DNA from: Saccostrea echinata
Lineage: Eukaryota
NCBI RefSeq assembly: GCF_033153115.1
Contig: NW_026889778.1
Span: 1,612,001-1,676,000 of the forward strand
Reading direction: 5' to 3'
Length of the DNA stretch: 64,000 bases
Below the pieces are notes generated by a model. That model was given only the letters and a program-made list of their open reading frames with translations, ran no database searches and had not been told where the DNA came from. Positions 44,489 to 57,176 of the stretch are shown here, one piece after another. Numbering within the stretch: the stretch's first letter is position 1; the number at the start of each line of letters is the position of its first letter. The translations under genes and the position numbers were made by a program.

Positions 44489-44853
44489 TTATGAGAACAT
44501 AAAATAACCGGATATCATTGTCTGGTCTCCATCAGCTGTTGAATCCTGCCTGACAGTTACGATATCGTTTCTGCGCAGGCGCAAAATGGCGAGATTGGAG
44601 CCACTATCATAGCCTGCGCTTCGTCCATCAGAGACTGTTTGTCCTACAGTTCCACCATTAACTTGCAGCCAGGATTTAAGGTGTCTATTATCAGCTTCCA
44701 TATTCCAGAAGAATATGTAGACGCCATCTTTGTTAGCTTGAAAGTTAGTGTGGTAGAACAAGCTGGACGTATCTAGATACTCTGTGCTGAAGTAGAGGGG
44801 AGAAGAGGAGGTTGAGGAGGGAGCCATCTCCATAAATGCTGCGGGGGAACTAC
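44489..44853 (-). CDS. Terminal exon 11 of gene C: divergent globular C1q domain 3
   Basis: F..KDGVYIFFW..SGSNLAILRLRRNDIVTV..TMISGYFMFS*; acceptor cctttag; AATAAA (minus strand) at 44335-44340. Confidence 0.85.
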
Positions 44854-54840: not shown

Positions 54841-57176
54841 TATAGGTCTAACATAAATACTATAGTTAACAATAGTTTACTAAAGTATGAATGTTTTCTA
54901 CTATAGTAAATCAAAATTTTTACTTTAGTTAATCAAATTATTATGACTATGAATTTCAAATTCAAATATTTTACGTTCCCCAATTAAAACGTCAAAATAT
55001 GTGCTATTAAAAGAAAATATTACTTTTATATTCACCTTTTATTTCCGAAATTTTCATCATTGGTATTGTATTTCAGAGATATCAAGCTTCGAAATCTCAA
55101 CAAAATATGGAATTTAGTAAACTACAGCTTACTATAGTAAACTACAGCTAACCATAGTAAACTACAGCTAACCATAGTAAACTACAGCTGATTATAGTAA
55201 ACTACAGCTAACCATAGAAAACTACAGCTAACCGTGGTGAACCACAGCTAACCATAGAAAACTACAGCTAATTATAGTAAACTACAGCTAACCATAGTAG
55301 ACTATAGCTAACTATAGTAAACTACAGCAAACTATAGTAAACTACAGCTAACCATAGTAAACTACAGCTAACCATAGTAAACTACAGCTGATTATAGTAA
55401 ACTACAGCTAACCATAGTAAACTACAGTTAACCGTGGTGAACCACAGCTAACCATTGAAAACTACAGCTAATTATAGTAAACTACAGCTAACCATAGTAA
55501 ACTACAGCTAACCATAATAAACTACAGCTAACTATAGTAAATTACAGCAAACTATAGTAAACCACAGCTAACCATAGCAAACTACAGCTAACCATAATCA
55601 ACTACAGCTAACCATAGAAAACTACAGCTAATTATAGTAAACTACAGCTAACCATAGTAAACTACAGTTAACAATAGTAAACTGCAGTTTACCATAGAAA
55701 ACTACAGCTAACCATAGAAAATTACAGCTAACCATAGTAAACTACAGCTAACCATAGTAAACTACAGCTAACTATAGTAAACAACAGCTAATTATAGAAA
55801 ACTACAGCTAACCATAGTAAACTGCAGCTAACCGTGGTAAACCACAGCTGATCATAGTAAACTTTAGCTAACCATAGTAAACTACATCTAACTATGGTAA
55901 ACTACAACTAACCATAGTAAACTACAGTTAACCATTGTAAACTACATCTAACTATAGTAATGTAATGTTAGTTTACCAACTGTTGTAGACAACCAGTCCA
56001 AAAGGACGTATCTCCGTTCTCTTTTCGGTACCTCTGTACTGCGCACACCTGTCAATGAATAAAGATCATTTCTAATAAAAAAAAATTTTAATGAATATTT
56101 TAGTTCAAAACATTATAGTTTGTTAGGTTAGTAAAACTTTTGTGGTTTCTAAATCAATCACCAAGCATACATTCTAAGCAACAAGCTTCAAGATCCCTCT
56201 TTCTGAAATGCAAATTGCAATTAATTCCATAAATTAAGAAAAGTTAACAAACACAGAGATAGTGGCTTTATAGTTTCACATAATACAAAGTATATATACA
56301 AGTATTTTAGAAAGCTTTGTTTTTTTTTTCTTTCTTTTTTTTTTGTTGTTTTTTTTTTTTTTTACTTTTTCTGAACTGGCTTTCTTTCTTTATATTCACA
56401 CAATATTTGGATAGAAATATTTCTTTTAAGTATCTTGAGCTAATAAAGTTAGATTATCTTACGTCACCATCTTGGCAGTACTCTATTCTCTCACAGAAAC
56501 GAGGCTCTAAGACGTCATCACAACGTAAACATCTTAACCCAAAACCTTTGAAAAAAAATTAAAATGCTTTTATTTTTTGAGAGCCTAGACAGCAAGATGA
56601 CTAAACCAACAAATCTCGTGGAATCATTTCACAGAAGTTCAATCCCAAACCTTCGTCTGATGACTAAATGTTTAGAATCATCGTGAATTATATTACATAG
56701 CATTGAATATTCATAACGATAATTCCAGATTAACGATAATAGATCGGTTCATAAGGTTCGGTTATGCAAGCTTACTCCCAATGGCATCTTGATCCAGTTT
56801 TCAGATCCTTGTTGGCTCTGCTGACAATTCCTATTGTCTGAATGAACTTTTGAGCATGACCACTGTTCGTTATCTTCATATTTTCTTTAACTCCTCATAA
56901 TAATCAAATATTTACTGGTGTTCTGTACACTATGGGACGGAAAAAGAGAAAATTAAATATAGAAAACGCATATTTTTGAACAAAGGCATGTTGAGCACGC
57001 ACTTGCTAAAAAACTTACCTTCAGCAGTATAAGAGATCAGCAAAGATAGTCCTGAAGAAAAAAAATATGAAATGGATTTAAAAGGGAAAGAAATGTCAGA
57101 AAATCATCCAGAGAGAGAGAGAGAGAGAGAGAGAGATGTATATACCACATAGGAAGTAAGTGAACAGATACATCAT
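44489..57176 (-). CDS. Intact multi-exon gene (copy C): secreted protein, signal peptide + 2 Ly6/uPAR-like three-finger domains + 3 tandem gC1q domains, 610 aa
   Basis: Exons (minus strand): 57176-57146, 57051-57019, 56545-56463, 56048-55977, 53573-53450, 52998-52904, 52064-51996, 47872-47704, 47042-46644, 45522-45130, 44853-44489. All introns are GT-AG, phases are compatible, total 1833 nt with no internal stop. N-terminus MMYLFTYFLCGLSLLISYTAEG is hydrophobic. LU1 ends CQECCYGDLCN and LU2 ends CSGCCKGDLCN. Exons 1-5 are supported by conservation in the paralogous copies in this window. The start codon and the exon 8 donor are the least certain parts. Confidence 0.85.
45130..45522 (-). CDS. 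Exon 10 of gene C: globular C1q domain 2
   Basis: FTFQNVITNNGNVYHSGNGTFVCPESGMYAFAF..LTRGDRVYL..STFSGWRI; 393-nt phase 1-1 exon. Confidence 0.92.
46644..47042 (-). CDS. Exon 9 of gene C: globular C1q domain 1
   Basis: AFYA..VIFNNVTTNEGLAYNGTSGIFTCKYSGPYVFSW..LKFGDKVRV..STFSGWRL matches gC1q motifs; 399-nt phase 1-1 exon. Confidence 0.92.
47704..52998 (-). CDS. Exons 6-8 of gene C: LU/three-finger-like domain 2
   Basis: PICFNCAHTLNPSDCHHVTLCGTNE|MCFLGERPVFGQRYFTSHCEDIH|ACENHVSAPIIVGRKRSLRGRRSYEPCSGCCKGDLCNINC. Same Cys pattern and same 1-0-0-1 intron phases as LU1. Confidence 0.8.
48468..48802 (-). mobile_element. Penelope-like 3' terminal fragment in intron 7 of gene C
   Basis: Well-preserved cassette (translates GVTGRQWMLTPPWHLIPPL). 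Confidence 0.8.
48995..50400. repeat. 43-bp pyrimidine-rich minisatellite, about 33 copies (intron 7)
   Basis: Unit CATTCTTGTCATAAGCTCCCTAATATCCTCTTTTCCTCTTCCT. Confidence 0.92.
50835..52020. repeat. 39-bp minisatellite, about 30 copies, overlapping the exon 7 end and donor
   Basis: Unit CACAGTGACTTGTTAGATGTTTACTTACGTGTATATCTT; minus strand AGTCACTGTGAAGATATACAC|GTAAGTAAACATCTAACA. Confidence 0.92.
53450..56545 (-). CDS. Exons 3-5 of gene C: LU/three-finger-like domain 1
   Basis: LRCLRCDDVLEPRFCERIEYCQDGD|VCAVQRYRKENGDTSFWTGCLQQL|SCPKVTNRTIVQTNKRKIHGSVLCQECCYGDLCNAEGC. Shows the LxCxxC start and CCxxDxCN end typical of LU domains. Confidence 0.85.
54845..55962. repeat. 20-bp tandem array (AACTACAGCTAACCATAGTA, 55115-55960) in a remnant related to the 8208-9183 element
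   Basis: About 42 units; the left part TAACATAAATACTATAGTTAAC resembles the TIR at 8208. Absent between the exon 4 donor and (GA)n in copies A and B. Confidence 0.85.

Follow-up and report, generated by a model that had tools for sequence, protein, structure and literature searches.

The stretch of the genome of Saccostrea echinata, the blacklip rock oyster, analysed here (the window, 64,000 nucleotides) holds a gene on the minus strand that runs from position 57176 to 44489 and was rebuilt by script as 11 exons (Table 1). Spliced together, the exons amount to 1833 nt and encode 610 aa in an uninterrupted frame that closes with TAA, and GT..AG ends are present in 10 of the 10 introns. An earlier note on this DNA, made from the letters alone, had proposed 11 GT-AG exons joining in frame without a stop, and the rebuilt model has the same length and outer coordinates; the note had also remarked that an open reading frame track displays only isolated C1q pieces, and the plain list made without splicing likewise contains just the three C1q pieces of the gene. 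The start ATG is the first one downstream of an in-frame stop located 8 codons upstream, and the 3' UTR runs to at least ~44431 (contigs of public runs, described below, reach 44431–44509). LU1, LU2 and each C1q domain form phase 1-1 units. The 22-residue N-terminus, judged by eye, by hydropathy and by alignment to ortholog N-termini, has no charge in positions 1–17 and a mean Kyte-Doolittle value of 1.77, so that the 610-aa product would be secreted through a predicted 22-residue signal peptide.

Table 1. Features of the LU-LU-C1q gene and the repeats in its intron 7 (positions are those of the window).
Feature	Position	Strand	Content	Basis or remark
Exon 1	57146..57176	minus	start codon and first half of the predicted signal peptide; 10 codons + 1 base	first ATG past the in-frame stop; donor G/GTATAT; resembles N-terminus of paralog P0151 in length and character
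Exon 2	57019..57051	minus	second half of the predicted signal peptide; phase 1-1	11/12 identical to P0151 residues 10–21 (tblastn); acceptor polypyrimidine-AG, donor GTAAGT
Exon 3	56463..56545	minus	N-terminal third of LU1; 4 Cys	alignment to P0001, P0151, P0011
Exon 4	55977..56048	minus	middle third of LU1; 2 Cys	75–87% identity to P0001, P0151 (tblastn)
Exon 5	53450..53573	minus	C-terminal third of LU1; 6 Cys; CCxGDLCN motif	41/41 residues same in P0151 (tblastn); motif scan
Exon 6	52904..52998	minus	N-terminal third of LU2; 4 Cys	97% identity to P0001, P0151
Exon 7	51996..52064	minus	middle third of LU2; 2 Cys	tblastn with P0001, P0151
Exon 8	47704..47872	minus	C-terminal third of LU2; 6 Cys; CCxGDLCN; Thr/Ser/Asn-rich linker	
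Exon 9	46644..47042	minus	gC1q domain 1; phase 1-1	RNA-contig joints at both ends
Exon 10	45130..45522	minus	gC1q domain 2; phase 1-1	RNA-contig joints at both ends
Exon 11	44489..44853	minus	gC1q domain 3; stop codon 44489–44491	RNA-contig joint 45130/44853
39-bp minisatellite, ~29.5 copies	50855..52019	minus	intron 7	Tandem Repeats Finder
43-bp minisatellite, ~33.5 copies	48986..50394	minus	intron 7; strong GC skew	Tandem Repeats Finder

The founder of the 39-bp repeat unit in intron 7 is the last 24 nt of exon 7 together with its splice donor. The same repeat follows the equivalent exon in the upstream paralog, and a few partial matches to it were found in the downstream paralog, at the edge of the short locus compared.

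Splicing was examined in contigs of public runs X1–X4 over positions 43500–48000, i.e. the exon 8–11 region only, where the contigs covered exons, not introns. Since the contigs are exon-only and spliced, we take the runs, as a guess, to be RNA. The joint from the last LU2 exon to the first C1q exon (47704/47042), which the earlier note had singled out as the junction to check, was present in contigs of X1 and X2, from two studies. Joint 46644/45522 was found in contigs of X1, X3 and X4, and joint 45130/44853 in a contig of X1, with a matching loose end in X2; all three joints carry GT..AG ends on the minus strand. At the exon 8 acceptor (position 47872) contigs end or continue exactly at the predicted border (X1 twice, X3 with 48 extra letters). 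The contigs differ from this gene at 0–2 positions, against an identity of only 82–96% for the paralogs in the same exons, and therefore derive from this copy. These results demonstrated splicing of exons 8–11. The junctions among exons 1–8 are predicted from canonical splice sites, from phases that match and from the collinearity of the individual exons with those of annotated paralogs and orthologs. Two further signals in the region were discarded: apparent RNA of high depth at 43708–43737 is a poly-T/A low-complexity word, and the depth over a candidate extra exon in intron 8 (47160–47600) comes from repeat contigs 90–95% alike with loose ends. An Rfam search of the whole window gave no match.

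The gene is one copy in a tandem cluster, in which two of the paralogs are annotated; the upstream neighbor, P0151 (S. echinata LOC133194312, 610 aa), is ~85% identical to it. Two protein searches, covering 94–297 and 326–1038 aa, did not find the gene's own product in the protein database, despite the presence there of the flanking paralogs from the same contig. The gene is apparently unannotated and missing from the public protein set of the species, which indirectly supports its earlier description as hidden. This absence from the database, the contig joints covering exons 8–11 only, and the damage in adjacent copies (an LU1 exon at 7702–7616 with two stops and a fragment at 34859–34773 with one stop) might be taken as a hint that the LU and C1q exons lie on separate transcripts, or that the locus is a decaying duplicate, the 610-aa frame being a computational construct. 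We consider this highly improbable. Exon 8 codes for the final third of LU2, contigs of two studies join it to C1q1, and its acceptor is in use. All 11 exons are open with canonical sites, and a dN/dS of 0.16–0.22 against both flanking paralogs, in LU exons and C1q exons alike, shows that the gene is under purifying selection. The 11-part layout is also annotated in P0151 and in four other species. The evidence supports a functional, transcribed gene to which the LU and the C1q exons both belong.

We asked next what the two halves of the product are, with annotated paralogs and orthologs standing in for the joined 610-aa chain in searches and models. The canonical LU cysteine framework, as in CD59, consists of an N-terminal CxxC, 8–10 Cys in all and a C-terminal CC-x4-CN. 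This framework is found in both LU1 (exons 3–5) and LU2 (exons 6–8), each of which has 12 Cys, one pair beyond the usual ten, with matching spacing (C-2-C-8-C-5-C-5-C-16/17-C-5-C-21/24-C-2-CC-4-C(N)-3/4-C); across 16 family members, conservation is 90% or higher in all 24 LU cysteine columns. A Pfam search of four LU exons of the gene taken singly gave no LU match, as each exon amounts to only a third to half of the domain, and a search of the closest paralog, P0151, gave nothing for LU at E<0.1. Matches above the Pfam cut-offs were obtained with two relatives, P0163 and P0175, both for UPAR_LY6 (PF00021, in a clan with PF00087 and PF01064; 26.8 and 27.3 bits, cut-off 24.8) and for Toxin_TOLIP (21.3 and 23.1 bits, cut-off 21.2). 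Full-length LU matches below cut-off (17–22.5 bits) were seen in P0152, P0154, P0164, P0171, P0173, P0011 and P0177.

The LU part of an AF2 model of P0151 had a pLDDT of only 25–60, for which reason this model was rejected as an answer on the LU fold and a second one, of the relative P0177, was needed. The LU-LU core of P0177, modeled from an alignment that included the family of this gene, reached a pLDDT of ~78–86. When it was compared with the PDB by Foldseek, the top matches were all three-finger structures, with uPAR at E 5e-5, PSCA, erabutoxin, BMPR-IA and GPIHBP1 at TM 0.5–0.7, and also ActRII. In a search of the PDB with the family profile at E≤10, the only non-C1q matches were PSCA and LYPD1 (E 1.1 and 3.2, not significant alone), and language-model neighbors in the ESM Atlas all belonged to the LU clan (scores 0.76–0.84, leads only). 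Because the gene's own exons and P0151 give no Pfam LU match and the LU part of P0151 is modeled at low confidence, assignment of the fold rests on more distant family members; judged from P0177, a three-finger fold of the LU-LU region is supported. The two three-finger domains that had been proposed from the sequence are thus supported by the conserved Cys pattern and the above-cut-off relatives, and the fold comparison suggested at the time, carried out on the P0177 model, returned three-finger structures only.

All three C1q exons exceed the curated cut-off of Pfam C1q (PF00386, 23.7 bits): exon 9 with 62.6 bits (E 5.5e-17), exon 10 with 59.3 bits (E 5.9e-16) and exon 11 with 31.7 bits (E 2e-07). 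These domain matches and the LU2-C1q1 junction in the RNA contigs bear out the order of signal peptide, LU, LU and three C1q domains given by the earlier note. The region ahead of C1q1 consists of LU-LU and the Thr/Ser-rich linker rather than a stalk of the type I/II C1q-like kind, and no collagen or coiled-coil Pfam match was found in the LU-bearing family members. The ten-strand jelly-roll fold and the trimer assembly of the C1q block are predicted, the AF2 model being that of the paralog P0151, not of this protein (C1q pLDDT ~85–90, pTM 0.62, 38% of the chain disordered). Single C1q domains of the P0151 model match C1ql, Cbln and C1q chains at TM 0.8–0.89. The triple C1q block superposes as a whole on 4DOU, 5HKJ/5HZF and 5KCA (411–421 columns, rmsd ~3 Å, TM 0.80–0.83), and the family profile and the single-chain C1q 5HKJ can be aligned collinearly over a single stretch (243–600). 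When the window's own C1q exons were submitted as three chains, the predicted complex had an ipSAE of 0.92, compared with 0.43 for the highest-scoring of 3 controls. Of 78 solved complexes, 51 attained that mark, as did 2 of 108 mismatched pairs. At least 90% of contacts were shared between runs, and partner pLDDT was at least 87. Since gC1q trimers are abundant in the training data, passing this test may reflect likeness to them rather than the behavior of this chain. The collinear alignment, the superposition and the complex prediction, all of them modeling, support the single-chain pseudo-heterotrimer that the earlier note had inferred.

Classical gC1q domains trimerise between chains, and the block might instead lack any intrachain head: parallel chains would then form three stacked homotrimers, or swapped lattices, and the product would be an oligomeric, multivalent agglutinin. 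In line with this, each domain of a mussel protein with three C1q domains, when isolated, bound bacteria and PAMPs by itself (PMC5519582), and C. virginica has proteins (P0158–P0162, 41–45% identical overall to P0151) in which a homologous triple-C1q block stands behind an N-terminal coiled coil, making higher-order assembly plausible. However, the linkers between gC1q domains are only ~6 residues long in the P0151 model (strands end at 354 and 488, and the next start at 361 and 495), and the family is collinear with trimers engineered as a single chain. The three gC1q domains of the gene are only 27–38% identical to each other, and their predicted hetero-assembly stands well clear of the controls. 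Moreover, oyster multi-C1q proteins most often have three domains; the secreted ones described from C. virginica, 21 genes, contain three 'in most cases' (PMC6835236). Weighing these points, we regard interchain assembly as unlikely. Our literature searches for an intrachain or pseudo-trimer in natural multi-C1q proteins found none.

We consider it fairly probable that the gene encodes a 610-aa secreted protein in which a LU-LU arm is joined to an intrachain, pseudo-heterotrimeric gC1q head, and which acts as a soluble recognition molecule of the C1qDC repertoire. After the 22-residue signal peptide, two LU modules of three exons each would be followed by a flexible Thr/Ser/Asn-rich linker of ~30 residues and by the three divergent gC1q domains, which most likely pack together within one chain into a jelly-roll head, making a collagen or coiled-coil stalk unnecessary for assembly. 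The LU-LU arm would take the place of the coiled-coil stalk of the homologous C. virginica proteins and is probably the partner-binding or effector end. The product would then most likely be a soluble, monomeric, lectin-like molecule, its head on a ligand surface and its LU arm on a second partner, e.g. a hemocyte receptor.

The same architecture might also serve a role outside immunity, as a shell-matrix or mantle protein, or as a signaling or adhesion organizer by analogy to cerebellin/C1ql and Lynx/Ly6. Receptor modulation is common among LU proteins, and cerebellin-1 and C1ql heads are among the best structural matches of the C1q block; C1qDC proteins have also been reported from shell and mantle (PMC7806589). 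On the other hand, most characterized bivalve C1qDC proteins bind PAMPs or microbes (PMC10672478, PMC6835236), and expanding immune families typically show tandem clusters that include pseudogenised copies; neither point is decisive. We judge a non-immune role to be somewhat unlikely, and an immune role of the recognition molecule is suggested by extrapolation from other bivalve C1qDC proteins.

Oysters have hundreds of C1q-domain genes, and the assembly of stalk-less and multi-domain C1q forms is not addressed in the literature examined. We lean slightly towards the broader view that oysters evolved natural single-chain gC1q pseudo-heterotrimers, in which one polypeptide builds an entire, asymmetric head with three faces and requires no stalk. 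On this view the N-terminus was freed in this family for a mobile LU-LU cassette, serving as an effector or receptor-binding arm, whose place a coiled coil can take, as in sister genes. The cassette is also found on other tails, cysteine-rich or mucin-like (P0177–P0179), and the phase 1-1 layout makes this immune-type family a clear example of exon shuffling, one that can be dated. If the head is intrachain, each of its faces could diverge alone, like the A, B and C chains of human C1q, with no need for co-expressing and sorting three genes, and the protein would be a ready-made, naturally optimized single-chain scaffold for structural and binding studies. Natural pseudo-heterotrimers, if they exist, would account for the usual count of exactly three domains in bivalve multi-C1q proteins. 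The LU-LU arm, for its part, gives a testable handle on what an invertebrate C1q protein contacts at its 'other end'.

Proteins with LU-LU and three C1q domains are annotated in S. echinata, S. cucullata, Magallana gigas, Crassostrea virginica and Ostrea edulis, labeled 'uncharacterized protein' or 'C1q domain-containing protein'. The relatives P0151, M. gigas A0A8W8LPU8 (613 aa), O. edulis LOC125658910 and S. cucullata LOC134245520 share with this gene its length, domain order, exon-by-exon layout and 24 Cys columns (per-exon identity to P0151 70–100%). A second subfamily (C. virginica LOC111104384, O. edulis LOC125648058) is only ~35–40% identical. The present gene differs from the annotated relatives as a separate paralog, with its product absent from the protein database. 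In a 2026 survey of invertebrate Ly6/uPAR proteins (Acta Naturae, PMC13719153), a molluscan three-finger protein with C1q domains was listed as a newly observed architecture. That protein is secreted and combines LU with C1q as here; the part of the survey available to us gives it one sentence and a predicted model, without gene structure, expression, trimer proposal or function. The earlier note knew of no characterized protein of this architecture, and we likewise found no functional or structural characterization, but the architecture itself is already annotated in five oysters and listed in the survey. We conclude that the gene is a further paralog in a barely studied oyster family, not a one-off, with an architecture already on record.

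With its predicted signal peptide and more than one C1q domain, the product falls within the smultiC1q class as defined by Gerdol et al. (PMC6835236). Bivalve smultiC1q proteins, including CfC1qDC-2 and HcC1qDC5/6, likewise have a signal peptide, three tandem gC1q domains and tandem gene clusters (PMC6835236, PMC5519582, PMC10672478), but they have either no N-terminal domain or, in its place, a coiled coil, none has been described with LU, and intrachain trimerisation is not raised in these three papers. The likeness in assembly is to engineered single-chain trimers, namely the human C1q head in the order A-C-B (5HKJ/5HZF), adiponectin (4DOU) and cerebellin-1 (5KCA), in which short linkers join the domains into one head. 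Those are laboratory constructs; here the three domains, which diverged long ago, are encoded by separate phase 1-1 exons of a natural gene, and the trimer is a predicted one. On the LU side, uPAR (three LU), C4.4A and TEX101 (two LU), and CD59 and PSCA (one LU) have tandem or single three-finger modules with a C-terminal CCxxxxCN, as here, but are GPI-anchored and without C1q. In the present product no C-terminal anchor signal was seen; its LU modules possess a sixth Cys pair relative to the usual ten Cys of LU proteins, and after LU2 the chain continues with the three C1q domains, finishing at the last gC1q strand.

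The minus strand of the locus was read from stop to stop, and candidate splice sites were combined with annotated relatives placed on the window by tblastn. The 11-exon, in-frame GT-AG model of the earlier note was reproduced to the base: by script, introns are GT..AG throughout, and the exons total 1833 nt, or 610 codons, with no internal stop and a stop codon at the end. Each domain is a phase 1-1 unit. The ORF list for 44-57.6 kb holds just three separate minus-strand ORFs, all above the Pfam C1q cut-off. Homology evidence was obtained by searching exons singly, with database relatives as stand-ins for the joined protein. 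Elsewhere in the window, 504-648 consists of 145 N (gap or masked).

Exons of the LU-LU-C1q gene in window coordinates
Exon	Position	Strand
1	57176-57146	-
2	57051-57019	-
3	56545-56463	-
4	56048-55977	-
5	53573-53450	-
6	52998-52904	-
7	52064-51996	-
8	47872-47704	-
9	47042-46644	-
10	45522-45130	-
11	44853-44489	-

Transcription of the C1q end was examined in public sequencing runs. The share of sampled words of 44400-47900 present in matching runs was 0.21-0.29, as expected from exon-only contigs. When four runs (X1-X4) were placed on 43500-48000, exons were covered and most introns had zero depth. Contigs skipped exactly from 47704 to 47042 in X1 and X2 (different studies, different organism labels), from 46644 to 45522 in X1, X3 and X4, and from 45130 to 44853 in X1, where X2 has a loose end that matches; every skip seen in contigs had GT..AG ends on the minus strand. 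At 47872, the predicted exon 8 acceptor, contigs end or continue past. They differ from the gene by 0-2 mismatches, whereas the paralogs are 4-18% different in the same exons. The RNA nature of X1-X4 is guessed, but contigs that lack introns and show canonical junctions are difficult to account for in any other way. Since the last third of LU2 comes from exon 8, the junction of that exon to exon 9 puts an LU exon and C1q exons on one transcript, and the LU2-to-C1q1 link proposed earlier is borne out in two studies. For the predicted junctions among exons 1-8 the basis is their splice consensus and phase, together with collinearity to annotated models from five species. A dispersed repeat lies within intron 8 at 47160-47600. 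It draws many RNA-run contigs that are 90-95% alike, whose ends hang loose on either side and whose depths add up to a high total; most likely this is a piece of a transposable element expressed at some other place.

Each of the two middle LU exons (4 and 7) has a minisatellite close behind it. Exon 7 passes into 29.5 copies of a 39-bp unit (50855-52019) composed of the last 24 nt of that exon plus its GTAAGT donor, and 42 copies of a 20-bp unit (55115-55960) start 17 bp after exon 4. In the upstream paralog the corresponding exon is likewise followed by the 39-bp array; for the downstream paralog, a few partial matches were seen at the margin of the short stretch examined. The intron before the last exon is 276 bp here and ~8.8 kb in P0151 (S. 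echinata LOC133194312), where a GC-rich, strongly skewed 29-bp satellite of 110 copies fills at least 3.2 kb (60814-63997) and leaves the window.

LU1 (exons 3-5) and LU2 (exons 6-8) each contain 12 cysteines, distributed 4 + 2 + 6 at matching exon boundaries with almost identical spacing, and both close with CCxGDLCN. Among 16 family members, 24 of 24 LU cysteine columns are conserved (at least 90% per column). Pfam UPAR_LY6 and Toxin_TOLIP exceeded curated cut-offs in the relatives P0163 and P0175, and seven more had full-length LU matches below cut-off; P0151, the closest paralog, had no Pfam LU match, and the LU part of its model is of low confidence. The LU-LU cassette of P0177, another relative, matches the family at E 1e-40, and its core was modelled at pLDDT ~78-86 from an input alignment that contained the LU-LU-C1q family. 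Its top PDB matches were all three-finger proteins: uPAR, C4.4A, PSCA, irditoxin, erabutoxin, BMP and activin receptors, and GPIHBP1. As supporting hints, language-model neighbours all belonged to the LU clan, and PSCA and LYPD1 were the only non-C1q PDB matches of the family profile at E<=10. The three-finger fold assigned in the earlier note is thus taken as well supported across the family, and as predicted for this gene through homology.

Full-length relatives (595-627 aa) occur in S. echinata, S. cucullata, Magallana gigas, Crassostrea virginica and Ostrea edulis, and form two subfamilies ~35-40% identical; all are named "uncharacterized" or "C1q domain-containing". A word-limited search with the LU-LU region gave oyster matches only. 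The modules also occur in other company: in C. virginica P0158-P0162 a signal peptide and ~200-residue coiled coil precede a homologous triple C1q block in place of LU-LU, P0177 continues into a second LU-LU pair and a cysteine-rich tail, and in P0178 and P0179 the cassette stands ahead of IgGFc-binding or mucin-like regions.

The contig also carries LOC133194308, LOC133194311 and LOC133194312. Window 59742-59383 is identical to the last exon (C1q3) of the last of these, P0151 (610 aa), which is therefore the upstream tandem neighbour. The exon 8 peptide has six close genomic copies; five of them share this contig, within 180 kb, and the sixth is on a different contig. Relative to both flanking paralogs dN/dS is 0.16-0.22, alike in LU and C1q exons. 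Between paralogs dS differs four-fold among exons (0.23-1.19); for C1q3 the downstream copy is nearest, for C1q1 and C1q2 the upstream one, a mosaic suggestive of gene conversion or of exons exchanged between members of the cluster. In the downstream paralog (4808-7702, continuing across the left window edge into the neighbouring locus L013) the first LU1 exon (7702-7616) contains two in-frame stops, and one Cys there is replaced by Ser; the middle and last LU1 exons, the last LU2 exon and all three C1q exons stay open (98% and 78-93% amino-acid identity to the gene studied). Probably this copy was disabled recently, or else it skips that first exon of LU1. An orphan fragment of another copy comprises the first and middle LU1 exons (36843-36757 and 34859-34773, the latter with an in-frame stop), with no further exons after it within the window. 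The annotated LOC133194311 model (P0001, 593 aa) has no signal peptide; G000:C29:1594129-1594159 (L013 129-159), 87% identical to exon 1 of the gene studied, sits about where its first exon is expected, and the public model may be truncated at its 5' end.

The earlier note had called the protein hidden. The gene's own product was absent from database proteins of 326-1038 aa and 94-297 aa in two protein searches, and the gene probably lacks protein-coding annotation; its family relatives are annotated. We conclude that it is a new member, probably unannotated, of an oyster LU-LU-C1q family.

The three C1q domains are 27-38% identical pairwise. In the AF2 model of P0151 (pTM 0.62, with 38% of the chain disordered) they reach pLDDT ~85-90 and are separated by ~6 residues. 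By Foldseek, this triple block as a whole superposed over 411-421 columns on trimers engineered as single chains, namely adiponectin (4DOU), the human C1q head (5HKJ/5HZF) and cerebellin-1 (5KCA) (rmsd ~3 Å, TM 0.80-0.83 by target), and also matched a single-chain APRIL-BAFF-BAFF trimer. Consistently, the family HMM gave a single collinear alignment to 5HKJ and 5KCA. Predicted as three separate chains, the window's own exons 9-11 gave ipSAE 0.92 against a maximum of 0.43 among three controls, a likeness and not proof, gC1q trimers being well represented among solved structures. Contact agreement between runs was at least 90% and partner pLDDT at least 87. Of 78 solved complexes 51 reach the mark passed here, as do 2 of 108 mismatched pairs. 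Modelling thus supports the proposed single-chain pseudo-heterotrimer, and the earlier interpretation as a whole is supported.

In the simplest reading, the 610-aa protein would be a secreted monomer whose head is a built-in heterotrimer of the three gC1q domains, and whose N-terminal LU-LU arm, tethered by a ~30-residue glycosylatable linker (pLDDT <50 in the P0151 model), would provide a second binding function. By extrapolation from those C1qDC proteins of bivalves that have been characterised (PMC10672478, PMC6835236, PMC5519582), it may act as an immune lectin.

The secreted multi-C1q class of Gerdol et al. has C1q domains numbering "three in most cases" (PMC6835236), and there are studies of three-domain proteins from scallop and freshwater mussel (PMC10672478, PMC5519582); neither LU domains nor an intrachain trimer appear in these papers. 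Among architectures "not previously observed", a survey from 2026 on three-finger proteins of invertebrates lists a molluscan protein with C1q domains (PMC13719153). The earlier note knew of no characterised protein with this architecture; the family is uncharacterised, but it is in databases and has one literature mention, in that survey. A literature search that reached few subscription journals found no natural single-chain or pseudo-trimeric C1q, and a natural single-chain C1q head is a point worth testing. Whereas the engineered adiponectin, C1q head and cerebellin-1 trimers are laboratory constructs, the gene studied here is a natural candidate, alike by the P0151 model.
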